Shown: positions 22,038 to 62,416 of the stretch, piece after piece | Numbering within the stretch: the stretch's first letter is position 1 | Layout of the letters: each line of letters opens with the position of its first letter | Sequence record: OR805295.1 | DNA length: 64,000 nucleotides | Reading direction: 5' to 3' (one strand) | The notes under the pieces: generated by a model | Told to the model about the DNA's origin: nothing | Database searches by the model: none | What the model saw: the letters and a program-made list of their open reading frames with translations, nothing else | Program-made: the position numbers and the translations under genes

Positions 22038-22610
22038 ATGAGCATACTTACCTCTATATTAAATAATACTTTAAATTCAGTAGTGTTTGTTTATGGTAGA
22101 ATGAATCCCCCTACAATAGGGCACGGAAAAGTTATATCAGAAATGCTAAAGATAGCAAAAGAATATAATGCTGCGCATTGTGTGTTTTTGTCTCATTCTT
22201 CTGGAAATAAAAAAAATCCATTACTTTGGGAAGAAAAAGTATCATATATGAAAATGTTTTTTCCCGGGGTAAATATTAACGAATCTAAAATAAATAATCC
22301 GTTTTCTGCATTAGATTTACTTTCGAAAAAATATAAACACGTAACCTTTATTGCAGGAAGTGATAGATTAGAAGATTACAAGAGAAATATGCCTGCATAT
22401 GCAAAAAGTATAGGCATAGAATTAGATATAATATCGTCTGGTGATAGACTAGAAGAGAGTACTTCTATAGAAGGTGTAAGTGCGTCTAAAGCAAGAAAAT
22501 TAGTCTTAGAAAACAACTTTGAACTATTTTCTGAATTAATACCATCTGACGATATTGCAGAAAAAAGAAATTTATTTTTGCTGCTTCAAACTAGATTAAT
22601 GGATAATTAA
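22038..22610 (+). CDS. cytidylyltransferase-like nucleotidyltransferase (HIGH family)
   Basis: YGRMNPPTIGH, HSSG.KKNPL, IAGSDR and SASKAR motifs. Confidence 0.8.
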   Translation: MSILTSILNNTLNSVVFVYGRMNPPTIGHGKVISEMLKIAKEYNAAHCVFLSHSSGNKKNPLLWEEKVSYMKMFFPGVNINESKINNPFSALDLLSKKYKHVTFIAGSDRLEDYKRNMPAYAKSIGIELDIISSGDRLEESTSIEGVSASKARKLVLENNFELFSELIPSDDIAEKRNLFLLLQTRLMDN

Positions 22611-22612
22611 AT

Positions 22613-23560
22613 ATGTTGAAAATAAAAGGAAGTCCATCCGTAGGCAAAATATCAGCAACAATTAATAGACCGTTTTTAACTAAAACCTTAGTTACTACGA
22701 TGCCACAAAACATTGCAAATTTTACTGCAGGTTATGGTGGCGGAATGTTGCATATATTCGGGGGCGAAGCTGTTCCTAGTGTAGGCCAAATACAAATATA
22801 TAGACGATACAATATAGCAACCAATACTTGGTTAAGTCCTAGCGGAAACATAGGAGCCTGGGCATGGGGAGGAGGCGGCTATTACAATGGAAGTTTTTGG
22901 GCGCTGTGTGGCTCTAACAATGGATATAATACTTCGTATTTTCAGATAAACCCTTCCACTGCAACAGGTACACGATATACAGATATGGCCGGCGGTTCTA
23001 GAGGACAAGGAAGAACCGCATCAGTAGATAATCTAAACGTATTTGTTATAGGAGGTATTGGGCAAAATAATATAACAAATGCATTGTGTTATAGATTTAA
23101 TGCTAGTACAAGAGCATGGACAGTAAGAACAAGTATGCCATCGCCAAGAAATGGTCATACGATAGGATCGTATAACGGGAAAATATATGTACTAGGAGGC
23201 TGGAACGAAACATCAAACAATCTTTCAGACGTTCTAGAATACAACATATCTACTAATACGTGGACAACTTTACCCACTACAATACCCGGAGCACCTTCTA
23301 GCTGGTTCGGCGGGTTTGTATATAAACAATATGCTGTATACGGCGCGTCATCTTCTTCTAATACGCTTTTATTTAAAATATTAGATTTAAATAAAATGAC
23401 ATGGGAAATTTTAGATACCGGGTTGCCTCGCCGGTGGTCAGCAGAATATGTAGTTACAGAAACCGGTGTATATATGATAGGCGGTAGTAGTTCTTATCCT
23501 GGTGCGTCCAACTATTTTACTGCCCCTAGATATAACGAAATATATTTCTTCAAAGGTTAA
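22613..23560 (+). CDS. Kelch-repeat beta-propeller protein
   Basis: Repeated GG doublets with downstream Y/W (IFGGE, VIGGIG, KIYVLGG..EYNISTNTWT, MPSPRNGH). Confidence 0.85.
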   Translation: MLKIKGSPSVGKISATINRPFLTKTLVTTMPQNIANFTAGYGGGMLHIFGGEAVPSVGQIQIYRRYNIATNTWLSPSGNIGAWAWGGGGYYNGSFWALCGSNNGYNTSYFQINPSTATGTRYTDMAGGSRGQGRTASVDNLNVFVIGGIGQNNITNALCYRFNASTRAWTVRTSMPSPRNGHTIGSYNGKIYVLGGWNETSNNLSDVLEYNISTNTWTTLPTTIPGAPSSWFGGFVYKQYAVYGASSSSNTLLFKILDLNKMTWEILDTGLPRRWSAEYVVTETGVYMIGGSSSYPGASNYFTAPRYNEIYFFKG

Positions 23561-23562
23561 AC

Positions 23563-25473
23563 ATGAAATTAGGAAAATTTAATCATAACGGAAATTTACA
23601 TATAAAATATAGACCGGCACCGTTAGTCGATGTAGGTCCTGTCCTACAATATAAATTTCTAGCAAATGAACCATTAGACGAAGCAACAGAATCGATGTCG
23701 ATTTCGTCTGGTACAGTTTCTATACAAAATAGTTCGATGTATACTTCCGGCAGCACAGTAAACAATTATTTCTATAGAAAATTACCTAGTATACTTAAAA
23801 ATACCAAATTTACAATAGAACTGACAATAAGGTCAGAAGGCGAAATTCCGTCTACTAGTAATATAATAGGTACATGGAATCCATCTAACGAATTTTGGTT
23901 GTTATCTGTAATTAACAACAATTTAGTATTTCAGTGGAATAATGGAACTGCCACTACCGGTACTAGACAAGTATTTACATTTAGTAATGTACAAGTACCT
24001 TCAGACCAAGACGTCCATTTAGCCGTATGTAGAGATGACACTATGTTATATGGATTTGTAAATGGACAACTGGCAGGTTCGTTTGAAGTGTCATTTGCAG
24101 GACATACTAATGTTGTATCGGGGTCTATATTCTCTACAAGAAGCATGGCCACCACAAATAACTATTTTAATGGATATAGAAAAAATATTAGAATAGTAAA
24201 TGACAAGGCATTATATGTTGCACCATTCACACTAGCTAGCGTAACTATGGCTGATGTAAAGCCAGACTACTATACCCCGGAAGATGCTAGCTTAGTAGTA
24301 GGTCAAATAACATGTAAACGAAATTCATTGTTCCAAGAAACTATGAATACTCCTACTTTACTACTTACGGGTTTATCTAATTCTACAACAGGACGATTTG
24401 TAACAACTACTAATAATACTTCTGGCTTCCAATTTTCTCCTGTAACAAATTGGCAATCGGGTGATTACACAATAGAATTATATATAAACTTATCTACAGT
24501 AGGCGCTGGCGGCGCCATACTAATAGGTCAATGGACATCTTCGGGTGGCACCGACATCGGATGGTCTATTTCTATGCAACAAAACGGAAGCGTCAGGCAT
24601 TTCTATTCCACTGACGGATTATACGACCAAGCAAACGGTAACTCTGGAGTATTGCAAGCACCTAATGGTACTTTAGTATTAAACAAAGATACCCATGTAT
24701 GTGCAATGAGGAAAAATGGAGTAATAGGATTATTTGTAGATGGTGTTAGACTAGCCCAGGTAAACGAGGCAAGGCCATTATGGAATAGTCAAATACCCAT
24801 TAGAAACACATGGACTGCGCCAGCAGATGGATATGCATTAGCAGAACGCTGGAATATAAGATGTATTTCTAAAGCAATGTATGATATAGACGGTTTCGTT
24901 CCGCCGGTTCGTTTACCTACATTTCCTAATTTATTAACAAATACAGGTAGTTATTCGCGCTCTGTGTTGTCTGGCACAACTACTACAGCAGATACAATGG
25001 GAAATATTATACAATTTAATTCTTCAGGACAAACATCCGGCGGCGGCTACCAAAAATATTTTATATATGGTTCTAAAAAAGTAGAAATAATAGGAAATAC
25101 CATATCTTCAGATTCAACACAACAAATGAGATATGGCTTATCAAACACAACTCCTACCACATTTGCAGAGTCAGAATCTGATTTTAATTCCGGTACATTC
25201 CCGTATGCGTATGCCGATAGAATTAACAGTGTCATTCAAATAGTTAAACAAGGTAGTGTTATAGGTAGTTTGCCTCATTCTACTGCCAACCACACCTTTA
25301 AAATAACATATGATTTCGAAAATAATCAGTTTACTTATGCAGTTACTTCTGGCACTGCACAAGGACAATCTGTTACTACAAGTCTAGATTCTACAATAAC
25401 ACAGAATACTAAGTTTGCAGTATGTGGGACCAAATCTAATATACAAATAACTTCTGTAAAAATACAACAATAA
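23563..25473 (+). CDS. protein with two LamG/ConA-like lectin domains
   Basis: Two copies of (F/Y)TIEL.I...HxAV(CR)/(MR)....L.GFV(N/D)G. Confidence 0.75.
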   Translation: MKLGKFNHNGNLHIKYRPAPLVDVGPVLQYKFLANEPLDEATESMSISSGTVSIQNSSMYTSGSTVNNYFYRKLPSILKNTKFTIELTIRSEGEIPSTSNIIGTWNPSNEFWLLSVINNNLVFQWNNGTATTGTRQVFTFSNVQVPSDQDVHLAVCRDDTMLYGFVNGQLAGSFEVSFAGHTNVVSGSIFSTRSMATTNNYFNGYRKNIRIVNDKALYVAPFTLASVTMADVKPDYYTPEDASLVVGQITCKRNSLFQETMNTPTLLLTGLSNSTTGRFVTTTNNTSGFQFSPVTNWQSGDYTIELYINLSTVGAGGAILIGQWTSSGGTDIGWSISMQQNGSVRHFYSTDGLYDQANGNSGVLQAPNGTLVLNKDTHVCAMRKNGVIGLFVDGVRLAQVNEARPLWNSQIPIRNTWTAPADGYALAERWNIRCISKAMYDIDGFVPPVRLPTFPNLLTNTGSYSRSVLSGTTTTADTMGNIIQFNSSGQTSGGGYQKYFIYGSKKVEIIGNTISSDSTQQMRYGLSNTTPTTFAESESDFNSGTFPYAYADRINSVIQIVKQGSVIGSLPHSTANHTFKITYDFENNQFTYAVTSGTAQGQSVTTSLDSTITQNTKFAVCGTKSNIQITSVKIQQ

Positions 25474-25841: not shown

Positions 25842-25870
25842 AAGCCGTGCTTTTGCGCGGCTTTTTATTT
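25842..25870 (+). terminator. intrinsic terminator
   Basis: aagccgtgc-tttt-gcgcggctttttattt. Confidence 0.7.
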
Positions 25871-25882
25871 TGTAGGACAATT

Positions 25883-28294
25883 ATGTACATCGATATTTTC
25901 GAAGATAAGAAAAATGAAATACTTCTAGTTGCAGAACGATCTGCAGGCAAACGAATATACAAACAATACCCTATAGATCATACGTATTACATATTAGATG
26001 CAAACGGACCGTATAAAGATATATTCGGTAATAATGCTAAAGCAATTAAGCCATCTAGCATAAATGAAAAAATGACTCAAATGAAAATGCTAGATTTTTC
26101 GCAAACGTGCGAAATAGACGTCAGGCCAGAATTTAGATGCCTGGAAGTAAACTATAAGAATGCACCTATGCCAGATTTACATGTTGCATTCTTCGATATC
26201 GAGACCGCGTTTGATCAAAAACGCGGTTATGCTGACCCGGCTGATCCTTTTAATCCCATTATATCAATATCTGTATATTTGCAATGGATGCAGCAAATGG
26301 TTTGCTTAGCATTAGCACCAGAGACTATATTGCCAGAAGATGCACAACGCATAGCATCGGAAGTAGGCGAAACAATTATATGTAAAAATGAAAAAGAAAT
26401 GCTAAGTATGTTTATTGACTTAGTAGAAGATGCAGATATTTTATCAGGTTGGAACTCAGAACGTTTCGATATTCCCTATACTTTTAACAGAATTGTAAAA
26501 TTATTAGGTAAGAATGAACTAAGAAAATTATGCCTTTGGAATCTTATGCCCAAGAAGCGCAATATTGAACAAGAAGGCGGCAGTAGTTTTGTTACATTCG
26601 AAACGTTTGGTAGAATACATTTAGATTATCTCCAATTGTATAAAAAATATAATTACGAAGAACGTCATAGTTACTCGTTAGATTCTATTTCGGAAATTGA
26701 ACTAGGTGAACGAAAAGTTCCATACAACGGAACATTAGACAAACTTTATAAATATGATTTTAAAAAGTTTTTAGAATATAACATTCAAGATACTCGACTC
26801 CTAGATAAGTTAGATAGAAAATTAAAATATATAGATCTAGCTTCCACTATTGCACATAGTAATTGCATTCCTATCCCTACTGTTATGGGTGCAGTAGCTA
26901 CAACCGAACAAGCAATTATAATCGAAGCACATAATAACGGCATGATAGTGCCATCTAGGCAACGTTTTAAAAACAATGATACACTTAAAGCTGCAGGCGG
27001 ATGGGTAGCATATCCTAAAGTAGGACTGCATAGAGATATTGGCTCCAGTGACTTAAATTCTCTGTATCCTTCTGTGTTAAGGGCACTAAACATGAGTCCA
27101 GAAACTATTATAGGACAAGTTCGGTTAACACTTACTAACCCTGCAATCGAAGAATGGTGTGCAAAAGGCGGAACAAAACATACATTTGCTGCATGGTGGA
27201 ACGATAGGTTTACCACTTTAGAAATGGAATATGTGTTAAACAAAGACAGGGGTACTATATTAACGTTAGATATGGCAGACGGGCGTTCGTTTGAACTGTC
27301 AGGTGCCGAAATATACGAATTAGTATTCAACAGTGGTCAGAATTGGCATATCAGTGCTAACGGAACTATATTTACACAAGACAGGGCAGGTGTAATTCCG
27401 TTACTACTTACAAGATGGTATGCAGAACGTAAAGGGATGCAGAAAATTGCATCAGATTATAATTCTTTAGATAAAGAACACCATAGCGACAAAACTGTAT
27501 TTTTAGAAGATAAATCAGTATTAGATGGAATATGCGTAGGCGAAGTCGAATTAGCAGACCATTATAATATTAATGATGTATATGTTGCAGCTACATTAAA
27601 AAAACTTGTCGAATCAAAAAATTGGCAAGAAGTAGCAATATATATGAAAAAGTATGGACTAGAAGTGTCGTCTGACAATTCAATTGTTATGTCAGATTCC
27701 CATATGCAAAACGAATATTACGAATATTGGGATAAAGCCCAGTTAGTTCGTAAAATTGGATTGAACAGCTTATATGGCGGACTACTTAACGAACATTCTA
27801 GATTCTACGATAAAAGACTAGGGCAGAGTACTACACTCACAGGGCGCTGTATCACTAGACATATGGCTTCTAAAACAAACGAAATGTTCACTGGCATTTA
27901 CGATCACGAAGGCGATTGTGTAATTTATGGTGATACAGATAGTGTAGATGGATCAACTATCCTAAATACTTCTCTAGGTAAAATAACTATAGAAGAATTG
28001 TTTAATGTGTCTGACAAGCATGTAGTTCATGCAGAAAAAGAATTTGCTTCAAATGAAGATGTTATGGTAATGTCGTGGGACAATTCTGCAAAACAACCAT
28101 ATATGGGGCATATAAACTATGTGTACCGCCACGAAGTAGAAAAAGAGTTATTCGAAATAGAAGACAACAACGGAAATAAAGTTATTGTAACCGAAGATCA
28201 TTCTATTATGGTTATACGTAATGCAGAACTACTAGAGGTTAAACCCACAGATTTAACAGATAGTGATATAATATTATCTATTGTATATGAATAA
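25883..28294 (+). CDS. polB: DNA polymerase family B, N-terminal part fused to split-intein N half
   Basis: ExoI FFDIET, ExoII GWNSERFDIPY, ExoIII YNIQD, motif A SSDLNSLYPS, motif B KIGLNSLYG, then YGDTD followed by intein sequence. Confidence 0.95.
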   Translation: MYIDIFEDKKNEILLVAERSAGKRIYKQYPIDHTYYILDANGPYKDIFGNNAKAIKPSSINEKMTQMKMLDFSQTCEIDVRPEFRCLEVNYKNAPMPDLHVAFFDIETAFDQKRGYADPADPFNPIISISVYLQWMQQMVCLALAPETILPEDAQRIASEVGETIICKNEKEMLSMFIDLVEDADILSGWNSERFDIPYTFNRIVKLLGKNELRKLCLWNLMPKKRNIEQEGGSSFVTFETFGRIHLDYLQLYKKYNYEERHSYSLDSISEIELGERKVPYNGTLDKLYKYDFKKFLEYNIQDTRLLDKLDRKLKYIDLASTIAHSNCIPIPTVMGAVATTEQAIIIEAHNNGMIVPSRQRFKNNDTLKAAGGWVAYPKVGLHRDIGSSDLNSLYPSVLRALNMSPETIIGQVRLTLTNPAIEEWCAKGGTKHTFAAWWNDRFTTLEMEYVLNKDRGTILTLDMADGRSFELSGAEIYELVFNSGQNWHISANGTIFTQDRAGVIPLLLTRWYAERKGMQKIASDYNSLDKEHHSDKTVFLEDKSVLDGICVGEVELADHYNINDVYVAATLKKLVESKNWQEVAIYMKKYGLEVSSDNSIVMSDSHMQNEYYEYWDKAQLVRKIGLNSLYGGLLNEHSRFYDKRLGQSTTLTGRCITRHMASKTNEMFTGIYDHEGDCVIYGDTDSVDGSTILNTSLGKITIEELFNVSDKHVVHAEKEFASNEDVMVMSWDNSAKQPYMGHINYVYRHEVEKELFEIEDNNGNKVIVTEDHSIMVIRNAELLEVKPTDLTDSDIILSIVYE
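27941..28291 (+). mobile_element. split intein, N half (117 aa, Ser1, no Cys)
   Basis: Begins SVDGSTIL immediately after YGDTD; block B IVTEDHS; ends at stop codon 28292-28294. Confidence 0.92.
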
Positions 28295-29969
28295 AGAATA
28301 TTATCAGTCATACGCAAAAGAATTAAAAAAGAATAATAAGAAAGAATACAATCGTATTCTTTCTTTGTATGAGCCCGTATTTGATAAATGGGTTGCATTC
28401 AAGTATTATATAGAAGGAATATCGCCGCCTGTATGTAAAGAATGTGGTAATAGAATAACTGTTTCGGCAAAACAAGCAGAATATCACACAGAATGCAAAT
28501 ATAATAAACACAAGTATTCATTTGATAAATTTATAAAATGCATAGATGATGACCAATACATATATTGTGTGTGGAATGGATATATTCCGACATCTGACAA
28601 TATAACATACAGATGCACTAAACACGGCATAATTGTTCAAAAACTTAGTTCTAGACTAAAAGGTCACAAATGCCAAAAATGTTCAGCTGAGCGTAAAGTA
28701 AGTCTAGATAACTTTAATAACTGGAAAACGCAGTGTTCTAAAATACATAATAATTTTTATGATTATTCTGTATCTACTGATTTTACATTCTTAACAAAAG
28801 ATGTATCTATTAAATGTCCAATACATGGAATATTTAAACAAAAAGCAAACGTCCATCAATCAGGTCACGGTTGTAAAAAATGCTCGTTCGAAGCTATCGG
28901 TCATAAATTATCATATGACACCGATTCTTTTATAGAAAGAAGTAATAACGTTCATAATAATTTTTATGACTATACCAAAACTATATACACTAACATTAGA
29001 GATAAAGTTGTTATAACATGTCCGATACACGGCGACTTTAACCAGATAGCATATTATCATACTGCCGGGCACGGTTGTCAGAAATGCGGTTTAGATAAAG
29101 TAGCAGAAACTACATATAGATCTAAGGCAGAAATAGAAATATTCGATTTAGTTAAATCTTATTGCTCAGATACAATTCATTCATACAATAAATTTGGGTT
29201 CGAATTAGACATATATGTTCCTAGTAAAAATCTTGCAATAGAATATAATGGACTTTATTGGCATTCTTCTAAACACATAGAAACTGATCAAAAATATAAA
29301 ACATACCATCTTGATAAAACCACTACATGTGAACAAAATAATATCCAATTATTACACATTTTCGACAACGAATGGCATACTAAAAAAGATATATGGATCT
29401 CGGTAATAAAAAATAAACTAGGTTTATCTAATAAAATATATGCAAGAAAAACAGAAATTAAAGAAGTTAAGTTCGATGATGCAAAGCAATTCGCCGAAAC
29501 GAATCATTTGCAAGGTCATGCACAATTTCGGCATGCATACGGATTGTATTATTCGGATCAATTAGTTTCTTTATTAACAATTGCAAAGCCCAGGTTTAAT
29601 AAAAATGCAAACTGGGAAATAGTAAGATTTTGTAACCTAAATAACACAAGTGTAATAGGTGGGTTTTCTAAATTATTAAAGGTAGTTTCTTGTAATTTTA
29701 CAGGCAAGATAGTATCATATGCAAATAGGCGCTGGTCTGCTGGAAACGTTTATGAAAAAAACGGATTTGCTAAAACTTCAGTAATAGCTCCTGGATTTTA
29801 TTATACTGACTTCAAAGATACATATAATAGATTATCTTTCTCTAAAGACAAGGCAAAAGTTAAATTAAAAAATTATAATAATTCAGTTAGTGTAGTAGAA
29901 AATATTTACGCAAACGGATATGGCAGGATTTGGGATTCAGGAAATATTGTTTATACAAAGGATTTATAA
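28287..29969 (+). CDS. free-standing putative homing endonuclease between the intein halves (Zn-finger repeats + Vsr-like PD-(D/E)XK + GNAT-like tail)
   Basis: Three C(P/T)xHG.....(H)..GH.C.KC repeats; ELDIYVPSKNLAIEYNGLYWHS; C-terminal SYANRRWSAGNVYEKNGF. ATG 28287 overlaps the polN stop. Confidence 0.85.
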   Translation: MNKEYYQSYAKELKKNNKKEYNRILSLYEPVFDKWVAFKYYIEGISPPVCKECGNRITVSAKQAEYHTECKYNKHKYSFDKFIKCIDDDQYIYCVWNGYIPTSDNITYRCTKHGIIVQKLSSRLKGHKCQKCSAERKVSLDNFNNWKTQCSKIHNNFYDYSVSTDFTFLTKDVSIKCPIHGIFKQKANVHQSGHGCKKCSFEAIGHKLSYDTDSFIERSNNVHNNFYDYTKTIYTNIRDKVVITCPIHGDFNQIAYYHTAGHGCQKCGLDKVAETTYRSKAEIEIFDLVKSYCSDTIHSYNKFGFELDIYVPSKNLAIEYNGLYWHSSKHIETDQKYKTYHLDKTTTCEQNNIQLLHIFDNEWHTKKDIWISVIKNKLGLSNKIYARKTEIKEVKFDDAKQFAETNHLQGHAQFRHAYGLYYSDQLVSLLTIAKPRFNKNANWEIVRFCNLNNTSVIGGFSKLLKVVSCNFTGKIVSYANRRWSAGNVYEKNGFAKTSVIAPGFYYTDFKDTYNRLSFSKDKAKVKLKNYNNSVSVVENIYANGYGRIWDSGNIVYTKDL

Positions 29970-30224
29970 ATGCATAATCTAACAAAACACCTTTTAGGTG
30001 TATTTTCTGCAAAAACAGAAGACGAAGAATATAACAGTGCAAAAAGAGCGTTAGAAGAATTAAACAAAAATATAAAAGAAAGAGATCCTAATAAATTTAA
30101 TGTGTCTTTAGGAAAGGTATCTAAAGTAACTAATTTAGGAAAAAAGAAACAATATGTATACGATATAGGGATGAAAAATCCCGATAATCCGTATTTCTTT
30201 GGAAATAATATATTAGTTCACAAT
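29970..30224 (+). mobile_element. split intein, C half (85 aa, ends His-Asn, +1 Ser, no Cys)
   Basis: Block F VYDI, block G VHN; extein starts at TCT 30225. Confidence 0.92.
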
Positions 30225-31109
30225 TCTTGCTATTTTACTGCATGGCCTGCAGTAAAAGACCTAGTAGAATCTGGCGAAATGGAATGGGATAAAGATACTG
30301 TCATTAAATTATACGACAATGTTTCGTCACAAGTAAGTGATACATTTCCAGAATTTTTAAAACAAACATTTAATGTTCCATATAAAAACTCAGAAGGTGT
30401 TATTAAGTCAGGTAGGGAAATTGTAGCTACTTCTGGTCTTTTTATTAAAAAGAAACGTTATGCTGCTATGATGTATGATAAAGAAGGTACTAGATACGAC
30501 GACGAAAACAGCCCAGGAAAAGTAAAAGCAATGGGTTTAGACTTACGTCGGTCAGATACGCCTAAATTTGTCCAAACATTCCTTATGGAAATTCTAGTTA
30601 TGGTGCTAACACATAAAACAGAAGATGAAGTAATAGAATATATCAGAGAATTTAAAAAAGAATTTAATAAAATGAAACCGTGGGAAAAGGGAATGCCAAA
30701 AGGCGTCAACGGTATCAGTACATATGAAGATAAATTAGAAGAACACATGAATAAAAAGTTAGCAGGAAGAGAGTCTAGAATCACTGTCCCCGGTCACGTG
30801 TCTGCTGCAATGAATTGGAATAAACTAAAGCTTATCAATAAAGACCTACATACTCCTAAAATCTCAGATGGTCAAAAATGTGTTGTTTGCTATTTAAAAG
30901 AAACAGCAGACAATCATTTCACTAGTATAGCATATCCTGTGGATGAATTGCACTTACCAGAATGGTTTACGTCTTTGCCATTTGATGAAGATTTAATGAG
31001 AGAAAAAGTAGTAGATAACAAAGTTAAGAACCTTTTAGGTATTCTAAAATGGGATTTTAGTAAAACAGAAGAAGCTGCTGCACACTTTGATTCGCTGTTT
31101 GGTTGGTAA
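29970..31109 (+). CDS. polB: split-intein C half fused to DNA polymerase B C-terminal part
   Basis: VYDIGM...FFGNNILVHN|SCYF, followed by KKRYA and KVKAMGLDLRRSDTP. Splicing would restore YGDTD-SCYF. Confidence 0.95.
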   Translation: MHNLTKHLLGVFSAKTEDEEYNSAKRALEELNKNIKERDPNKFNVSLGKVSKVTNLGKKKQYVYDIGMKNPDNPYFFGNNILVHNSCYFTAWPAVKDLVESGEMEWDKDTVIKLYDNVSSQVSDTFPEFLKQTFNVPYKNSEGVIKSGREIVATSGLFIKKKRYAAMMYDKEGTRYDDENSPGKVKAMGLDLRRSDTPKFVQTFLMEILVMVLTHKTEDEVIEYIREFKKEFNKMKPWEKGMPKGVNGISTYEDKLEEHMNKKLAGRESRITVPGHVSAAMNWNKLKLINKDLHTPKISDGQKCVVCYLKETADNHFTSIAYPVDELHLPEWFTSLPFDEDLMREKVVDNKVKNLLGILKWDFSKTEEAAAHFDSLFGW

Positions 31110-31131
31110 TCAAAAACTATACTTTGTACAC

Positions 31132-31160
31132 TTGCATTATGAAAATATTTAATGTATAAT
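31132..31160 (+). promoter_or_regulatory. sigma70-type promoter
   Basis: TTGCAT-17 bp-TATAAT. Confidence 0.7.
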
Positions 31161-31189
31161 TCACACACATCTTAGGAGAATAATAAGTA

Positions 31190-31936
31190 ATGATTGTAGA
31201 CAATTTAAAGGACGTAGTTCGTAACACTCACGGTTTAGGTTTTATAGATACTGTTAAAATTATCGGTTCTGTAAATGAAACTAAATTAGAAGCTATGTCA
31301 ACTAATAAAACTGTAGTTATGTACGGTTCTTTAAAAAAATCCATTCCGGGGTTAGACGATACTGTAGGTTTAAGTAGAATGTCTGTACTGAGCGGTATGT
31401 TAAATTTCCCACCATATTCGGGAGATGATGCTGAAGTTTCTATTAAGAAACAAGAACGTAACGGTGAAGAAATTCCTGCAGAAATTGTATTTTCTTCTTC
31501 GACGGGTCATAAATCGTCGTACCGGTTTATGGCACGAGATACAGTAGATGAAGTGCTAAAAGTTCCGCCGTTTAGAGGAGTTGTGTGGGATATAGTTATT
31601 CAACCTACTAAGCAAGCGATGAAAGATCTTCAATACTTTAGTGCTGTACTGGGTTCTTATGAATCTAACTTTTTAGTTAAAGTAACAGACGGTGTTTTAG
31701 AATTCCACATAGGTACTGGTGCTACTAGCGACCGTACTGTTGTACCATTTGCAAAAGATGTCAAGAGCACATTACGCAATAACTGGTCCTGGCCATTACC
31801 GGAAGTGTTAGCAATTCTAAAAAACGCAGATAGTGGCAAATGTACTATGTCTATTTCTAGTCAGGGTGCATTGATGATTGAACTCGACACTGGGCTAATA
31901 GAAGTTCAATATATTCTTCCTGCAAAAAGTGCATAA
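31190..31936 (+). CDS. putative sliding clamp / polymerase processivity factor
   Basis: 248 aa (clamp-like size), alternating beta/alpha pattern, directly after the polymerase. No diagnostic motif. Confidence 0.45.
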   Translation: MIVDNLKDVVRNTHGLGFIDTVKIIGSVNETKLEAMSTNKTVVMYGSLKKSIPGLDDTVGLSRMSVLSGMLNFPPYSGDDAEVSIKKQERNGEEIPAEIVFSSSTGHKSSYRFMARDTVDEVLKVPPFRGVVWDIVIQPTKQAMKDLQYFSAVLGSYESNFLVKVTDGVLEFHIGTGATSDRTVVPFAKDVKSTLRNNWSWPLPEVLAILKNADSGKCTMSISSQGALMIELDTGLIEVQYILPAKSA

Positions 31937-31939
31937 ATA

Positions 31940-32200
31940 ATGATCTTACCTGCTCGTAAATTAGTTAAATTGCAATACTATATTGTACAGGAATCTTACA
32001 ATTCTATAGGTAGACCAATAACTACAGTTACTCTTGTATACAGAAAATATATATTTTTTACAAAGAAAGAAAAAATTATATTCGAGCGTATTAAGAAAAC
32101 AGACAATTTGTATTATAAACAAGAATCCGAAAAAGAGTTGTGTGAACAACTAAGTGTATGGGCAAAAAGAACATTAAAAATATATGATATAGGGCAATAA
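31940..32200 (+). CDS. hypothetical protein
   Basis: 86-aa ORF in operon position. Confidence 0.55.
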   Translation: MILPARKLVKLQYYIVQESYNSIGRPITTVTLVYRKYIFFTKKEKIIFERIKKTDNLYYKQESEKELCEQLSVWAKRTLKIYDIGQ

Positions 32201-32215
32201 TTGCCCTATATTTTT
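32187..32215 (+). terminator. intrinsic terminator
   Basis: atatagggcaat-aa-ttgccctatattttt. Confidence 0.75.
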
Positions 32216-32272: not shown

Positions 32273-33895
32273 ATGAAAAATTTATCAAACAGTCAAAAAG
32301 ATTATGCGATCTATTTGCCTGCAATTAGTGGGTTTTACACAAAACAATTAGACAGTTCCATTAACGATCCGTCTACAAGAAAAATACCTAGCTTTCCCAA
32401 TGGATATAATACTCTTAATTTTTTAGATCCATCTAGCGATACTTTCTTTTACGGGTATGGGTTATATTCTGCAGGCCATGCAGAACTGTCTTTATCTAGA
32501 ACTGATGCAAAAGAATGGATGATCCAAGCCAGGGACAAAACACAAACAACAGTTATTGCAGATTCGGGTGGTTTCCAGGTAGCTACTGGTGTAATTAAAT
32601 TAAACTGGGATGATTTTAAAGGAGCTAGCGGAGATAAAATAAGAAATGAAATTTTAAAATGGTGTGAACATACCGCTGACTGGTCAATGACACTAGATGT
32701 TCCTGCGTTTGCTGCTACTCCTCCGTACAGCTCAAAAACCGGTCTTAATAAATTTGAAGATACATTAGATTATTCTCTTCATAATTTACATTATTACATG
32801 AAGAACAGAACTCCAGGCGCAACTAAATTCCTTAGTGTATTATCGGGATCAGACGTAGATACATCTAAGATTTGGTACGACAACGTAAAAGCATTTAGTG
32901 ACCCCGCTAAAGTAGTAGAAATGGGATATCCAGCTAGTCATACACTCGAAGGATATGCATTTGCTGGTATAAACATGAGAAATATGTATTGTGCTCTTTC
33001 TCGATTCTTAGATCTAATAGATGATAATATTATTTCAGATAAAAACTGGATACACTTTCTCGGACTAGGCAGGACCGATTGGGCTTGTTTCTTAACATCT
33101 ATTCAACGAAATATAAGAAAACATTATAATCCCAATATTAACATAAGTTTTGACGCAGCTTCTCCGTTTGTTTCTGTAGCATACGGCCTTGCATATAACT
33201 ATAATTATTTTAATCCTAAACGGTGGGGATATAATATGGATTCTGCCCCGGACAGTAGAGAGTTTAGTGATAAAGATATTCCTATGCCGTTTATGAGTCC
33301 TATTATGGAAAAATTATCATTAAAAGATATATGTCCATATCACAACGGTTATGGTATAATAAATGGTGTTAAAAATGCAAACTTTACAAAAGAAGATGTA
33401 GAAACTGCTCTCAAAGAAGGAAAAGATGCAGAATACGTGCCACCGAGTGCAAATAAAAATGGTAAAGTAGGTAAAACCAGTTGGGATTCACTTAGTTACT
33501 TATTAATAATGAATCACAATGTTTACAATCATATAGCTGCAATCCAAGAATCTAATAGATTAGTTGATATAGAACGGTTGCGAGTTAAAGTAGATTACCG
33601 AGATTGGACTAGAGATAAAAAGAAAGGTACTATAGAAGTAAGTAATCACGTCCCTAGTTCGATTTTATACTTTGATCATTTTGTAGAAGTATTGCTAGAT
33701 CCGAGTACTCCTAATAAGCGACAATTACTAGAAGATTATAGACCTATGCTAGACAGCATTAGTTTCGGTAATTATAACTCAAACTCATTTAACAGTCTTT
33801 TTGATGTAGATGCTACTGCAATTGAAGATGAAAATAAGTTTGCAGACATAAACGACGAAAAACTAACCGAATTAGAACAAGGATTAGACAATTAA
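32273..33895 (+). CDS. tRNA-guanine transglycosylase-like protein (DpdA-type candidate)
   Basis: IADSGGFQ, TLDVP, WIHFLG and ISFDAAS align with the TGT barrel motifs. No CxCxxC Zn site. Confidence 0.75.
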   Translation: MKNLSNSQKDYAIYLPAISGFYTKQLDSSINDPSTRKIPSFPNGYNTLNFLDPSSDTFFYGYGLYSAGHAELSLSRTDAKEWMIQARDKTQTTVIADSGGFQVATGVIKLNWDDFKGASGDKIRNEILKWCEHTADWSMTLDVPAFAATPPYSSKTGLNKFEDTLDYSLHNLHYYMKNRTPGATKFLSVLSGSDVDTSKIWYDNVKAFSDPAKVVEMGYPASHTLEGYAFAGINMRNMYCALSRFLDLIDDNIISDKNWIHFLGLGRTDWACFLTSIQRNIRKHYNPNINISFDAASPFVSVAYGLAYNYNYFNPKRWGYNMDSAPDSREFSDKDIPMPFMSPIMEKLSLKDICPYHNGYGIINGVKNANFTKEDVETALKEGKDAEYVPPSANKNGKVGKTSWDSLSYLLIMNHNVYNHIAAIQESNRLVDIERLRVKVDYRDWTRDKKKGTIEVSNHVPSSILYFDHFVEVLLDPSTPNKRQLLEDYRPMLDSISFGNYNSNSFNSLFDVDATAIEDENKFADINDEKLTELEQGLDN

Positions 33896-34956
33896 TGAAA
33901 GTTATAATAATCCCAATCGAATCAATAGAAACTCGGTATACGTCAGAATGGAATACGTTTCTTAAACCGCAACTAAAAAAATATATAAACGAATCCGGTC
34001 TCGATGCAGAAATAGTTCAAATTGATGTAGATTATGTTGACGAAGGCACCTCTGCGGGCGCCTTCCTTAACTTTGCAAATACAAACATATTCAAAAGCAA
34101 TCAATTCATTAAATTAGCAAGTATAATAGAAACTTTAAACGATAACGATGTTGTTCTCTATACAGACGCATGGAATCCCACAGTAGTTCAACTAAATTAC
34201 ATGCGATCGTTAATGAATAAAAAATTTAAAATAATGGGGTTGTGGCACGCCGGTTCGTATGATCCACATGATTTTTTAGGAAGGCACTTTGATAAAAATT
34301 GGTCATATGAATTTGAAAGATCATTATATAATATATATGATGTAAATTTCTATGCAACTAATTTTAGTAAAGATCTCATGATAGATAACCTTTTTGGTAA
34401 AACAGCTAACGTAAACAGACACGATATAGTAGGTTGGCCAATGGAATATTTAGTTGACCAACTTACACCTTCTATTAACAAGACAGATACTGTATTATTT
34501 CCTCATCGAATTTCTCCGGAAAAACAACCAAATATATTTAAAAAATTAAGATCATTACTTCCTAACTACGAGTTTGTTTTTGCACAAGAAACTAAATTAT
34601 CAAAGTCAGAATACCATACACTTCTTAAACGTTCTAAAATTGTCTTTTCGGCTTCGTTGCAAGAAACATTGGGTATAGGTTTCTACGAAGGCGCATTAGT
34701 CGGTGCAATTCCGTTATTGCCTGACCGATTGTCTTATAAAGAAATGACAGAAAATGTAAAAAACAGAAATTTGTATGTATATCCAAATGAATGGACTATT
34801 TCGGAAAATCTGGCAGACCTAAAAAATTTAGTTACCCTAATAGATTATACTATGCGTAATTATAATTTTATAGTAGAAGAAATGAAACTTAATTTACTGC
34901 CCGAATTAAACAAATATTATAACGGAACAGAGTTGTATAAAAGAATTTTAAAATAA
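33895..34956 (+). CDS. GT-B (GT4-like) glycosyltransferase
   Basis: WHAGSYDP, LFPHRISPEKQP, SASLQETLGIGFYEG (E-X7-E). Start overlaps the TGT-like stop (TAATG). Confidence 0.8.
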   Translation: MKVIIIPIESIETRYTSEWNTFLKPQLKKYINESGLDAEIVQIDVDYVDEGTSAGAFLNFANTNIFKSNQFIKLASIIETLNDNDVVLYTDAWNPTVVQLNYMRSLMNKKFKIMGLWHAGSYDPHDFLGRHFDKNWSYEFERSLYNIYDVNFYATNFSKDLMIDNLFGKTANVNRHDIVGWPMEYLVDQLTPSINKTDTVLFPHRISPEKQPNIFKKLRSLLPNYEFVFAQETKLSKSEYHTLLKRSKIVFSASLQETLGIGFYEGALVGAIPLLPDRLSYKEMTENVKNRNLYVYPNEWTISENLADLKNLVTLIDYTMRNYNFIVEEMKLNLLPELNKYYNGTELYKRILK

Positions 34957-35040
34957 TTTCCATTTAATATTCTGCATACAATTTACATTTTAATACGAAA
35001 ACATTATAATATTACAAAATTAAAAATAAGGATTATTTTT

Positions 35041-35418
35041 ATGGGAATTAAACGATGGATCGAAGTTCCTTTTCAAAAAGAAGGAATTCACATGTACCCG
35101 GGTGCAGATAGTAACCCTGCACTAGCTACAAATGATTGGAAAGATGTATCTTTTTTAGGATATCCTCATTTTCATTATTTTTATTTTACTGTTAAAATTG
35201 AAGTTTTTCATAATGAACGAGATATCGAATTTATTCAATTTAGACGGTTCTTAGAAAGACTGTATAGTGAATCTCTGCTAAAACTAGATGGTAAATCTTG
35301 TGAAACAATGGCAGAAGAATTATATGAACAAATTAACATTGTATATCCTAGCAGGGACGTTGTGATTACAGTGGCAGAAGACAATATTAATAAAGCTGTT
35401 TTAGAATTTTTCAAATAA
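35041..35418 (+). CDS. QueD-like T-fold protein
   Basis: EGIH.YP, LGYPHFHYF (HxH metal site), RDIEFIQF, SCETMAE, V.VAED. Confidence 0.7.
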   Translation: MGIKRWIEVPFQKEGIHMYPGADSNPALATNDWKDVSFLGYPHFHYFYFTVKIEVFHNERDIEFIQFRRFLERLYSESLLKLDGKSCETMAEELYEQINIVYPSRDVVITVAEDNINKAVLEFFK

Positions 35419-35432
35419 GCAAGGATGCTATT

Positions 35433-35693
35433 ATGTATAATAAACAACTGTCGGGAATATATACTACTACAACGATAAACTCTATGCCAGCTAGCTACTC
35501 CGGATTAACGGATCTAGGCATGTATGATACAGAACTTTCGGTATTGAGGAAAAAGATAGAACAGATAGAAAAAATGTTGTGCATGTTAGAAGTAGATAAA
35601 TTACTTTCAGAAAAATATCCTGCATTAAAATCTGCATATGACGAATACGAAGTCATATTATCTGTCATAAACGGTACGGAGAAAAAAGAGTAA
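35433..35693 (+). CDS. hypothetical protein
   Basis: 86-aa ORF with AGGA RBS. Confidence 0.6.
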   Translation: MYNKQLSGIYTTTTINSMPASYSGLTDLGMYDTELSVLRKKIEQIEKMLCMLEVDKLLSEKYPALKSAYDEYEVILSVINGTEKKE

Positions 35694-36212
35694 ATGGCAA
35701 TGCGTGTCATTATTACTGGTTGTAACGGTTATGTTGGTAAAACAGTAAGCAAATACTACTATACATTAGGATATAATGTCGTGGGATTTGATTTAATTAA
35801 TTCAAAAAATAGTTACATAACTAATTTTTATCAAACTAGCTATGCATCTAGTATTGCAGAAGATATAATACTCGAATCTGATGCAGACACGTTTATTCAT
35901 TGTGCTGTAGAAAAAAGCAATACATTACAACAACATTTCTACCACAATAGTATTCAATTTATAAACTTATTATCAGTATTAAAAAATACTTCTATAAAAG
36001 AAATAATAGTATTTAGAAATAAAAGTGCAGAAAATAATGATGCCCTTTTAAAACTCTCTAATAACACTAATAAAGACTATTTAGAAGAATTTTCTAAATC
36101 GACAGGAATTAATTCAAAAATATATAATTTGTTAGATAAGAATAATGAACAACACATTATAGAATTAGTACAACCGTATTTAGAATTAAGTAAACACTTT
36201 TATATATTTTAA
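35694..36212 (+). CDS. truncated NAD-dependent epimerase/SDR-like protein
   Basis: IITGCNGYVG Rossmann motif and FIHCA. Only 172 aa; no YxxxK seen. Confidence 0.6.
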   Translation: MAMRVIITGCNGYVGKTVSKYYYTLGYNVVGFDLINSKNSYITNFYQTSYASSIAEDIILESDADTFIHCAVEKSNTLQQHFYHNSIQFINLLSVLKNTSIKEIIVFRNKSAENNDALLKLSNNTNKDYLEEFSKSTGINSKIYNLLDKNNEQHIIELVQPYLELSKHFYIF

Positions 36213-36223
36213 GGAGATATTAT

Positions 36224-36658
36224 ATGTACGATAAAAATTTTGTATCAATGGATCAAATGCCAGTTATTGTCAGTGACTTAGTTAGTGATATAGACGAAGC
36301 AGGAATTTCTCCTAAAGTTATTATTGCTATTAGCAAAGGTGGACTAATTCCTGCCACTATGATTAGCTATTATTATGATTGCCCTATTGTAACATACGAT
36401 CCGGTAGAAGATTGTTTTAGTACAAATAATGACATAAGTTCTGAATGCATTATCGTAGATGATGTTATTGACACCGGTAATACTGTAAATTCTGTTATTT
36501 CTTTGTTAGAAGACGAATTCTTTTTTACGAAAGAAGACATTAGTAGAATTAGAGTAGCATCAATATTTGCAACAAGAAATAATACAATTGTAGATTTTTA
36601 TCATGATGAAATAAGTTACCATGATTCGGTAAGTTTTGAATTTAAACAATTTATTTAA
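36224..36658 (+). CDS. type I phosphoribosyltransferase (purine PRT-like)
   Basis: AISKGGLIPA and PRPP-binding IIVDDVIDTGNT. Confidence 0.85.
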   Translation: MYDKNFVSMDQMPVIVSDLVSDIDEAGISPKVIIAISKGGLIPATMISYYYDCPIVTYDPVEDCFSTNNDISSECIIVDDVIDTGNTVNSVISLLEDEFFFTKEDISRIRVASIFATRNNTIVDFYHDEISYHDSVSFEFKQFI

Positions 36659-36665
36659 TATAAAG

Positions 36666-36698
36666 TTATTCTTTACTTTTAGTATGATTGCGTTTATA
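36666..36698 (+). promoter_or_regulatory. possible sigma70-type promoter for the QueE-like gene
   Basis: TTTACT-17 bp-TATAAT within this interval. Confidence 0.4.
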
Positions 36699-36728
36699 AT
36701 GTATATTATAAAATAAAGCGGATTATGT

Positions 36729-37601
36729 ATGAAACACAGATATACTGAAAAGTTTTTCTCAGTCCAGGGAGAAAGCCTACATACCGGAAAACTATGCACT
36801 TGGCTTAGATTTTTCGGATGTTCGTTGCAATGTAGGGGCTTTGGACAAAAAGAACCTGGAAATCCCGAAACATGGGTAGAACAACGACCGGATTTAATAG
36901 ATGTAACAAACATTACAGATTATAAACAATTACCGACTCCTAAGTATGGATGTGATTCAGACTATTCTGTATTTGCTAAATTTAAACATCTTGCAACAGA
37001 AGTCGATCCTGTTGTAGTTGCAAATGAAATAAAACAATTAATTCCTAGTAAAACATTTGGTAAAAAAATAGGTCATGTATTTACGGGCGGAGAACCGTTA
37101 GTAAACCAAGAATCTATAGTAGATATAGTAAATTATTGGATAGATACTAATGATTATCCTGCATGGATAGGAATAGAAACAAATACAACTAGACCGTTAG
37201 AAAAATGCTTAATCGATTTAGTTAACAGATGTAAATCGATTGGTGTGCAATTTTATTTTTCTATGTCACCCAAACTACTTCATGTAGCAGGTGAACAACC
37301 CAAACGAGCTATCCATATAAATTTAATGAAGGAATATATAGATATTGCACCGGATAGCTATCTAAAATTTGTAGTAAATGAAGATCAGCGATCGTGGGAT
37401 CAAGCAAAAAGTATAGTAGACACATTAAATGCTGACGGGTATTTACCAGATGTGTGGGTTATGCCAGTCGGAGGCATTTATTCCCAACAAACAGACCCAG
37501 TAATTGGAAGACTTGCAGATAAAGCTATCTTCGAATACGAATGGAATGTTAGTTTACGTGTTCACGTATTAACTTGGGGTGACGATCAACTAGGTAGGTA
37601 A
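36729..37601 (+). CDS. queE: 7-carboxy-7-deazaguanine synthase-like radical SAM enzyme
   Basis: EKFFSVQGE, WLRFFGC, FTGGEP, IETN, MSPKL, LKFVV, MP.GG, SLRVH; Cys motif CX3CX39C. Confidence 0.85.
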   Translation: MKHRYTEKFFSVQGESLHTGKLCTWLRFFGCSLQCRGFGQKEPGNPETWVEQRPDLIDVTNITDYKQLPTPKYGCDSDYSVFAKFKHLATEVDPVVVANEIKQLIPSKTFGKKIGHVFTGGEPLVNQESIVDIVNYWIDTNDYPAWIGIETNTTRPLEKCLIDLVNRCKSIGVQFYFSMSPKLLHVAGEQPKRAIHINLMKEYIDIAPDSYLKFVVNEDQRSWDQAKSIVDTLNADGYLPDVWVMPVGGIYSQQTDPVIGRLADKAIFEYEWNVSLRVHVLTWGDDQLGR

Positions 37602-37605
37602 AACC

Positions 37606-38025
37606 ATGAACCGTATTATCCTTTCTGTAGTGTTTAGTTTAATATCGTCGTATGCAGTATGCGGAGAAAATAAATCCTATATAAATCCGCATCTTCATGG
37701 AAAATGCGTCGGGATGGTTACTAAACTGTCTGAATATGCAAATACCGAAGTATTAACTTTAAAATTGTATAATATAGGTCAGGTACTTCATGCATACGGC
37801 AAATACACTGCACTAAAATCGAATAATGCAGATACAGCACTGTATGATCAAGGATTAGTTGACGGAAGAGAAACAGTTTCTAAAAATATAGAAAATAACA
37901 ATTTTAATGTTTTAGTAAAATATTATGAAGATAATTGTCTAGAAATATTTTACAAATCTGCAGACTGGTTATATCATAATAACATACACCAGTTCAATAA
38001 ATTAACGGATATTTTTAATAAATGA
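37606..38025 (+). CDS. hypothetical protein with signal peptide
   Basis: MNRIILSVVFSLISSYAVC N-terminus. Confidence 0.6.
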   Translation: MNRIILSVVFSLISSYAVCGENKSYINPHLHGKCVGMVTKLSEYANTEVLTLKLYNIGQVLHAYGKYTALKSNNADTALYDQGLVDGRETVSKNIENNNFNVLVKYYEDNCLEIFYKSADWLYHNNIHQFNKLTDIFNK

Positions 38026-61909: not shown

Positions 61910-62416
61910 ATGGATAGAAAAGAAGTAATTTATTTTATAGGAACAGAAGTCGAACATACTCCAGTATACGGTGAAAAAACACTTTTTGTTGCTGGTCCCC
62001 AAGACGGCGACGAAGTAGTAAGTAATGCATTGAAACATAACTGTAAACATATATATTTCGGTGCTAATCAAAGTTTCCCTCTACACGAAATAGATATAAC
62101 AGAAGTAATTAAATGGAAACAAATGATACTGCATTGCTTAAATAAAGGATTTTGGTGTACTTTAGATTTTGATATATGCAATTCTTCTGCAATTTTAGAA
62201 ATGGATTTATCTAAGTATGATAAATTTATTCCTATTATAAGTGCAAAAATACCAAATATATCCGAATACAATAAAAACACTATATTAAAGATAGATGATA
62301 TAGGTTTTGATGAAACTAACGAAGGAGTATGGTGTCATAAGTTAAATGATTTAAAAGATAATACCGTACATACTAGCTGGGACAAATATACAGGAGATAT
62401 TTCAATTGACGAATAA
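61910..62416 (+). CDS. hypothetical protein
   Basis: YFIGTEVEHTP..GEKTLFV, HIYFGANQSF, GVWCH; ATG 61910 preferred. Confidence 0.7.
   Translation: MDRKEVIYFIGTEVEHTPVYGEKTLFVAGPQDGDEVVSNALKHNCKHIYFGANQSFPLHEIDITEVIKWKQMILHCLNKGFWCTLDFDICNSSAILEMDLSKYDKFIPIISAKIPNISEYNKNTILKIDDIGFDETNEGVWCHKLNDLKDNTVHTSWDKYTGDISIDE

Follow-up and report, generated by a model that had tools for sequence, protein, structure and literature searches.

A 5.3-kb region (positions 32273-37601) of a 64,000-nucleotide window of sequence record OR805295.1 was analyzed; "the window" refers below to the whole of this stretch, and window positions equal record positions minus 62,000. The region is that of Pseudomonas phage Paride (OR805295.1; 100% identity), a PA5oct-like phage of the genus Wroclawvirus. 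It is probably the core of a DpdL-type 7-deazaguanine DNA modification module of a PA5oct-like jumbo phage, with a glycosyltransferase among its members that may act on the deazaguanine base or its precursor. Seven open reading frames (ORFs), all on the + strand, were found in it (Table 1). A first-pass annotation, made from the sequence without database searches, had proposed a cluster for 7-deazaguanine modification of DNA directly downstream of the PolB gene and a clamp-like gene; the genes it listed all lie where it placed them, on the + strand, as do PolB and the clamp-like gene upstream. The proposal itself was borne out by the gene set, by a gene order like that of phage 9g, and by the published restriction resistance of PA5oct DNA and its attack by END nucleases (PMC12191111). 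Because the arrangement is syntenic across 82 related loci, it is, judged by sequence comparison, not due to chance. The observations reported here concern folds, motifs, orthology, gene content and synteny. Ten other PA5oct-like records (genomes of about 287 kb) are 98.6-99.1% identical to the Paride region; they annotate most of its genes as "hypothetical protein", name QueE and in some cases name the phosphoribosyltransferase (PRTase), an epimerase domain or GT4.

The first gene codes for a protein of 540 amino acids (aa) that had been called tRNA-guanine transglycosylase (TGT)-like from its DSGGFQ motif, here placed at residues 97-102. Neither the protein nor profiles built from it gave a significant match in sequence searches of Pfam, NCBIfam, PHROGs and the PDB. 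The superfamily assignment was made from the predicted fold and a broadened family profile, since only these pointed to TGT. The AlphaFold model (predicted local distance difference test, pLDDT, 87.8; built on 34 homologs) had the eukaryotic TGT subunits QTRT2/TGT as top solved matches in Foldseek (probability 1.0, E 1e-4), and in VIA-align reached a Z of 17 with TGT, against 11 or less for all other TIM barrels; the earlier call was thus confirmed at the level of the fold. Viral models matching the fold came from Vibrio phage nt-1, Cellulophaga phage phiST and phages annotated with queuine tRNA-ribosyltransferase, with DpdA-type proteins among them, and the nearest named clusters in the ESM Atlas were viral TGT-like and DpdA-annotated. 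Against the PDB the broadened profile retrieved almost only Zymomonas TGT, at sub-threshold E values of 0.2-0.5 (40 of 45 matches were TGTs).

A profile search of 1.84 billion representatives gave 1,021 clusters at E ≤ 1e-3 (293 at E ≤ 1e-30), and contigs of jumbo-phage size yielded over 1,600 homologs at about 50% identity. Besides DSGGFQ, the motifs LDVP and FDAASP were recognized. Ten residues (D97, S98, G100, Q102, D142, P144, G227, H261, G264 and D294) are invariant in 41 family members of 26-38% identity. In the profile alignment to TGT, DSGGfQ falls on the D102 motif (TGT residues 99-110) and tlDvP on the D156 motif; the counterparts of the base-binding aspartates of the Z. mobilis enzyme (D102 and D156) are the invariant D97 and D142. 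The mnHN segment, with H415, aligns with the zinc-ligand histidine (TEHN). The invariant D294 of FDAASP, which lies outside the residue-level alignment, is placed after HxLGxG as the nucleophile D280 of Z. mobilis would be. On the modeled fold, the protein is an enzyme of the TGT/DpdA superfamily, of an undescribed long subfamily, and is predicted to be a DNA guanine/7-deazaguanine exchange enzyme.

When the 41 members were run against Pfam, three reached the TGT model (E 0.0045) and none the DpdA model; the accepted DpdA1 of phage 9g and DpdA3 of phiST likewise give no Pfam match. The nearest named relative by hhalign was the DpdA-like gp123 of phage ACP17 (probability 78%). Placement within DpdA1 to DpdA4 was not possible: profile comparison detected no similarity to 9g DpdA1, and the match to phiST DpdA3 (259 aa) was weak (hhalign probability 36%). 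Of 50,697 records of cultured phages, only those of PA5oct-like phages and of Sinorhizobium phage Phosso (28% identity) contained the family, apart from a partial match in Vibrio phage 2.275.O.

The 125-aa protein had been described as a QueD-like T-fold gene. That it is a T-fold paralog of QueD was upheld; its identity as QueD was rejected, as Leu stands in place of the catalytic Cys and the genome has true QueD paralogs at other positions. It matched CGPG_00067 of phiST (E 4e-8, 33% identity) and gp125 of ACP17 (E 3e-24, 46% identity), which are the two proteins named DpdL, the proposed 7-carboxy-7-deazaguanine (CDG) decarboxylase (Cui et al. 2023, PMC10516641). DpdL is defined by conversion of the QueD motif CxxxHGH to LxxxHRHxF (PMC10516641); the signature in Paride is L-G-Y-P-H-F-H-Y-F, with F replacing the R. 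By homology and motif the protein is a DpdL ortholog, and because it is DpdL and not QueD the base to be expected is of the CDG/7-deazaguanine type, and not preQ0, preQ1 or G+.

QueE, also named by the first-pass annotation, was assigned through PHROG 2076 (QueE-like; E 6.6e-49), its best NCBIfam score (41.6 bits) being below the cut-off of 260. It has an N-terminal FxSxQGE motif and three cluster cysteines in an unusual spacing, C-x3-C-x39-C, the insertion being common to the relatives and phage X1. The whole 287-kb Paride genome was read for further pathway genes. FolE is Paride_0051 (Pfam, E 4e-60), and two QueD paralogs were found: Paride_0052, with the canonical CxxxHGH, and Paride_0056, with CxxxHGY, an ortholog of the phiST and ACP17 QueD proteins that is 35% identical to the former. 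All three lie at 39.8-43.3 kb of the record, about 20 kb before the window starts. The stretch OR805295.1 39822-43260 (27822-31260 of locus L091) groups FolE, QueD, a ClpX-like AAA ATPase, a homolog of ribosomal protein S21 and the second QueD paralog. No QueC is annotated in the Paride genome, and tblastn with Gat-QueC of phage 9g gave nothing at E ≤ 0.01. FolE and QueC had been correctly noted as missing from the window; of the two, sought in the rest of the genome as then suggested, folE was found and queC is absent genome-wide. Without QueC the pathway can reach CDG but not preQ0. The Paride set of FolE, QueD, QueE and a DpdA-like gene, with no QueC, is that of a DpdL-type genome.

The stop codon of the TGT-like gene and the start codon of the glycosyltransferase gene overlap as TAATG (33893-33897), as expected from the translational coupling proposed earlier. 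The glycosyltransferase was modeled (pLDDT 82) as two Rossmann domains in a GT-B fold, also in line with the first-pass annotation, and its nearest structures are the GT4 enzymes BshA, MshA, PglA and PimA (E 1e-9 to 1e-10; template modeling score 0.55-0.68). The Pfam model Glycos_transf_1 gave 19.1 bits with the Paride protein, below the gathering threshold of 26.4, and matched 15 of 19 homologs weakly. Neither AGT nor BGT of phage T4 was among the top 50 structural matches in the PDB, no QTMAN_N domain was detected, and QTMAN-like clusters scored no better than generic GT4; a specific kinship with either group was rejected on structure, domain content and cluster scores. The protein is 38% identical (E 2e-61) to gp124 of ACP17, whose gene is sited between the DpdA-like and DpdL genes.

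The 172-aa ORF, called a fragment of a short-chain dehydrogenase/reductase (SDR) by the first-pass annotation, indeed corresponds to no more than the N-terminal Rossmann portion of an extended SDR: it lacks about 150 residues at the C-terminus, and other residues stand in place of the catalytic Ser run and Tyr. At this position the relatives have an intact GalE-like gene (312-353 aa), and on this comparison the Paride ORF is the stub of a GalE-like enzyme, catalytically dead. One relative, 80% identical, also has a stub, equal in size but only 33% identical to that of Paride; a recent pseudogene origin was rejected on this ground, and the remnant must be old and fast-evolving. Synonymous sites were saturated, so that dN/dS was unusable. 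The purine-type PRTase was confirmed by Pfam PF00156 (43.6 bits, cut-off 26.3). Its phosphoribosyl pyrophosphate (PRPP) loop, VDDVIDTGNT, is intact and aligns to the loops of GpT-2 and XGPRT, its best matches of solved structure are 6-oxopurine PRTases from archaea and bacteria, and by sequence it looks like an ordinary guanine/xanthine PRTase.

The related loci comprised 80 from IMG/VR and two others. In all 82, PolB and the clamp gene are followed downstream by the TGT-like gene, sometimes with small ORFs between. For 52 loci with at least 9 kb 3' of the TGT-like gene, genes were counted by iterated search; these are metagenomic loci, and the counts for QueE, FolE and PRTase are limited by flank length. 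DpdL and a protein designated p172 were found in 52/52 loci, the glycosyltransferase in 51/52, the GalE-like epimerase in 48/52, QueE in 42/52, FolE (within 10 kb of the TGT-like gene) in 36/52, PRTase in 33/52 and QueC in 0/52. In locus L004 FolE is inside the module, with the PRTase adjoining it. p172 had no match in Pfam or the PDB and no convincing protein match in the Atlas. Its gene stands directly after the TGT-like gene in L004, directly before DpdL in L096 and L097, and directly before the DpdA-like gene in ACP17 (29% identity to Paride). In Paride this strongly conserved protein of no recognizable family is displaced 27 kb downstream. The Phosso gene annotated "glycosylase" at the matching position was considered and proved to be no homolog of p172.

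Further lineages were found among cultured phages. In ACP17 the order of gp122-gp126 is p172-like, DpdA-like, glycosyltransferase, DpdL and QueE. Xanthomonas phage X1 (and BUDD) has FolE, a gene resembling phosphoadenosine phosphosulfate (PAPS) reductase, two further genes, glycosyltransferase, TGT, DpdL and QueE. In Burkholderia phage BCSR5 DpdL is followed by an AAA-type ATPase, a weak PAPS-reductase-like gene, a PIG-L-like gene, one more gene and the glycosyltransferase, then by a 446-aa gene, a small ORF and QueE. Sinorhizobium phage Phosso has PolB, clamp, one gene, DpdL and the glycosyltransferase, with FolE and QueE further on. With the Paride lineage, there are thus five independent lineages in which no more than 4 kb separates the glycosyltransferase from DpdL; in genomes of 156-469 kb such a recurrence is very unlikely to have arisen by chance. 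Seven other DpdL lineages, phiST among them, have no homolog of the Paride glycosyltransferase. Because 51/52 relatives retain it and four other lineages have it close to DpdL, the glycosyltransferase is placed in the pathway; its true membership of the deazaguanine module, the part of the earlier glycosyltransferase proposal that held, is well supported by this gene context. At the sequence level, a core of four to five genes (p172, DpdA-like, glycosyltransferase, DpdL and QueE) is common to unrelated phages.

The match of the BCSR5 PIG-L-like gene to the sugar de-N-acetylase family was weak (24.3 bits; Pfam cut-off, 28.2). By analogy, its position near a GT4 gene recalls the MshA/MshB and BshA/BshB pairs and hints at a GlcNAc-type sugar in that lineage. 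The PAPS-reductase-like genes, of the ATP pyrophosphatase fold, occur in the glycosyltransferase/DpdL clusters of BCSR5 (L099, 10267-13207) and X1 (L098, 4837-7606). The extra genes of X1 and BCSR5 suggest further, different decoration chemistry.

PA5oct DNA was reported to resist five restriction enzymes, from which a modified G was inferred, the base not being identified (2025 preprint, PMC12191111). The phage is also restricted by END nucleases, one of them specific for modified G, and only QueE and one 6-pyruvoyltetrahydropterin synthase (PTPS) were held responsible for the modification (PMC12191111). The panel consisted of ten enzymes, all with G in their sites, of which five were listed as unable to cut (PMC12191111); by implication the other five, all G-containing, still cut. 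This partial digestion fits partial, context-dependent exchange better than total replacement.

The closest system with a measured base is phiST, whose DNA contains 2'-deoxy-7-deazaguanosine (dDG) at 302,000 per million nucleotides (PMC10516641). Like Paride, phiST has FolE, QueD, QueE, no QueC, a DpdL with the Cys-to-Leu motif and a divergent transglycosylase. Unlike Paride, it has a short 259-aa DpdA3 and, in the locus examined, no glycosyltransferase, p172 or PRTase; no Cellulophaga phage was among the glycosyltransferase or p172 homologs. ACP17 shares five genes with Paride (p172, 29% identity; DpdA-like; glycosyltransferase, 38%; DpdL, 46%; and QueE). It differs in that it is T4-like, with a genome of 156 kb, that its transglycosylase has 424 aa and that no PRTase or epimerase was seen in the cluster. 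No measurement of ACP17 DNA was found; the paper in which its DpdL was named does not list the phage in its table of DNA analyses (PMC10516641). ACP17 DpdL and DpdA expressed alone gave no dDG; the glycosyltransferase and p172 had been left out of that experiment, and their omission may explain its failure.

Post-replicative exchange of G by a TGT-family enzyme, as proposed for Paride, is also the mode of the DpdA1/DpdA2 phages (9g, dG+; CAjan and iggy, dPreQ0) and of the bacterial Dpd system, and the order polymerase, clamp, DpdA of phage 9g is that of Paride. Unlike Paride, these systems use QueC or Gat-QueC and insert preQ0. Modified bases are sugared by GT-B enzymes in the glucosyl-hydroxymethylcytosine (hmC) of T-even phages (AGT/BGT) and in the mannosyl- and galactosyl-queuosine of tRNA (QTMAN, QTGAL); QTMAN is a GT4 enzyme that acts on a 7-deazaguanine derivative. 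FolE, QueD and QueE are combined with a PRTase in the tubercidin (TubE) and toyocamycin (ToyH) pathways, which make a free nucleoside antibiotic and have no transglycosylase or DNA target.

All the enzymatic steps, as well as the nature of the base and of the sugar acceptor, are inferred, as follows. Guanosine triphosphate (GTP) would be converted to CDG by FolE and QueD, encoded upstream of the window, and by QueE; with no QueC the pathway would halt before preQ0. From CDG the DpdL ortholog most likely makes 7-deazaguanine, the reaction proposed for phiST, and the 540-aa enzyme would exchange guanine for 7-deazaguanine in replicated phage DNA, probably at selected sequence contexts. The glycosyltransferase most likely transfers a sugar from a uridine diphosphate (UDP)-hexose onto the deazaguanine base or a free precursor; the GalE-like epimerase found next to it in relatives, and decayed to a stub in Paride, would fit such a donor. 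The PRTase most likely returns the released guanine through guanosine monophosphate (GMP) to GTP, feeding FolE.

Several points weigh against this scheme. No curated TGT or DpdA model (Pfam PF01702 and PF23859) matches the 540-aa protein at E values up to 10, and the cysteine triad of the TGT zinc site (CxCxxC...H) is missing from it, one nearly invariant Cys (C354) being present. The enzymes structurally closest to the glycosyltransferase have small molecules or lipid-linked sugars, and not DNA, as their substrates. 7-Deazaguanine is without a hydroxyl group, and dDG offers nothing equivalent to the hydroxyls that accept the sugar in hmC and queuosine; as dDG has no hydroxyl, the sugar acceptor is the weakest point of the mechanism. 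The 52 loci are one clade, whose synteny counts as a single observation, and only about five lineages are independent. Decarboxylase activity of DpdL has been shown for no member, and heterologous expression failed (PMC10516641). The literature search found no DNA chemistry for any PA5oct-like phage.

In its widest form the proposal is that a glycosylated 7-deazaguanine is present in the DNA of the PA5oct-like phages, ACP17, X1/BUDD, BCSR5, Phosso and a very large clade of uncultured jumbo phages, with the sugar added by the GT4 enzyme, the UDP-hexose tuned in most of them by the GalE-like epimerase, and the transglycosylase forming a new DpdA subfamily. This is put forward tentatively, the odds being somewhat against the proposal as a whole. 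The nearest competitor of the scheme above, rather unlikely in our estimate, is that the base in the DNA is dDG (or dCDG) without a sugar, like that of phiST, and that the glycosyltransferase acts elsewhere, for example on a pterin or other small-molecule intermediate, a protein or a component of the host envelope, and is retained only through shared regulation. The small-molecule and lipid-sugar GT4 enzymes that neighbor it in structure, the lack of an obvious O-glycosylation site on dDG, the seven DpdL-bearing lineages without a homolog and the decay of the epimerase in Paride all speak for plain dDG. They have to be set against the closeness of the glycosyltransferase to DpdL (4 kb or less) in all five independent lineages that have both, with genomes of 156-469 kb, the overlap of its gene with the transglycosylase gene, and its loss from just one of the 52 relatives.

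That the modified base enters before or during replication is improbable. In this case the PRTase would make a deazaguanine ribonucleotide, ribonucleotide reductase (RNR) and kinases would convert it to the deoxynucleoside triphosphate, PolB would incorporate it, and the TGT-like protein would be an accessory or have a different role. Tubercidin and toyocamycin biosynthesis provide examples of PRTases that accept CDG or preQ0, the PRTase gene is present in 33 of the 52 relatives and next to FolE in L004, and the Paride genome encodes RNR, a deoxynucleoside monophosphate kinase and MazG. However, the PRTase resembles ordinary 6-oxopurine enzymes and is missing from 19 of the 52 relatives, the TGT-like gene being present in all, and DpdA is present in every known deazaguanine phage. 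With only five of the ten tested enzymes listed as non-cutting, and G in all ten sites, context-selective exchange fits better than bulk replacement. The first-pass suggestion that the PRTase supplies deazapurine nucleotides to the polymerase was not supported, recycling of the guanine released by base exchange being simpler. A role confined to phage or host tRNA, which the first-pass annotation had also allowed for, is very improbable: the fold is that of a tRNA-guanine transglycosylase and the phage encodes many tRNAs, but PA5oct virion DNA is restriction resistant and sensed as modified, the gene follows PolB and the clamp gene in the replication block, as DpdA1 does in phage 9g, and its DpdL partner is tied to dDG in phiST DNA.

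Earlier work had already described that PA5oct has a G modification and a QueE gene. New relative to the literature searched are the DpdA-like enzyme, the orthology with DpdL, the finding that QueC is absent, p172 as a partner and the conserved link to the glycosyltransferase; that literature contained no report of glycosylated deazaguanine in DNA, and there is a realistic chance of a new DNA base. The transglycosylase named here is annotated as hypothetical in all eleven PA5oct-like genome records. Its family comprises about 1,000 metagenomic clusters at 50% identity, and the PA5oct-like phages, as almost its sole cultured members, offer a tractable model; they are also phage-therapy candidates, and Paride kills dormant Pseudomonas aeruginosa. 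If the proposal is true, a sugar on the base would be a new class of DNA hypermodification, with bearing on restriction, CRISPR, END-type defenses and the sequencing of such phages. To our knowledge, glycosylated 7-deazaguanine would then be the first sugar-bearing purine described in any genome.

Table 1. Features of the predicted module and its surroundings (window positions).
Feature	Position	Strand	Basis or remark
PolB in two pieces and 248-aa clamp-like gene	25847..31936	+	Context directly upstream of the module
Terminator-like hairpin, 12 perfect pairs and T-run	32186..32212	+	Between clamp-side genes and TGT-like gene; reads as a terminator on both strands
540-aa TGT/DpdA-like transglycosylase	32273..33895	+	Fold, motifs, family profile
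353-aa GT4-type (GT-B) glycosyltransferase	33895..34956	+	Predicted structure, homology
125-aa DpdL ortholog, QueD-paralog T-fold	35041..35418	+	Homology, motif
86-aa protein	35433..35693	+	In 18/52 related loci
172-aa remnant of GalE-like extended SDR	35694..36212	+	GxxGxxG kept
144-aa type I PRTase, 6-oxopurine (guanine/xanthine) kind	36224..36658	+	PF00156, PRPP loop
290-aa QueE-like radical SAM enzyme (CDG synthase)	36729..37601	+	PHROG 2076, motifs
168-aa p172 (Paride_0169), displaced module member	61910..62416	+	Homology to module genes in relatives

The hairpin upstream of the TGT-like gene is likely to be a transcription terminator that parts the module from the clamp-side genes. Promoter scans around the module gave matches at chance level only. 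In public sequencing runs the Paride sequence was found only as assembled contigs; the raw-read runs listed were short-read, from related studies and without an indexed match.

The 139-aa ORF that follows QueE (37606-38025) has a signal-peptide/lipoprotein-like start and no homolog in the related loci, some of which hold a 2-oxoglutarate (2OG)-Fe(II) oxygenase at this place (L004, 10370-10954). The PolB gene (25847-31109) is split in two, with a homing-endonuclease-like ORF (DUF723) lying in between; the first piece ends in the N-half of an intein splicing domain and the second begins with a C-half, a split-intein or "fractured gene" layout. In most relatives PolB is a single ORF of 880-990 aa, and a few have two pieces. 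Upstream of PolB (22038-25473) are a cytidylyltransferase-like gene (as annotated; no Pfam match), a Kelch-repeat protein and a lectin-like (Laminin_G_3) protein; the nucleotidyltransferase could in principle make an activated sugar.

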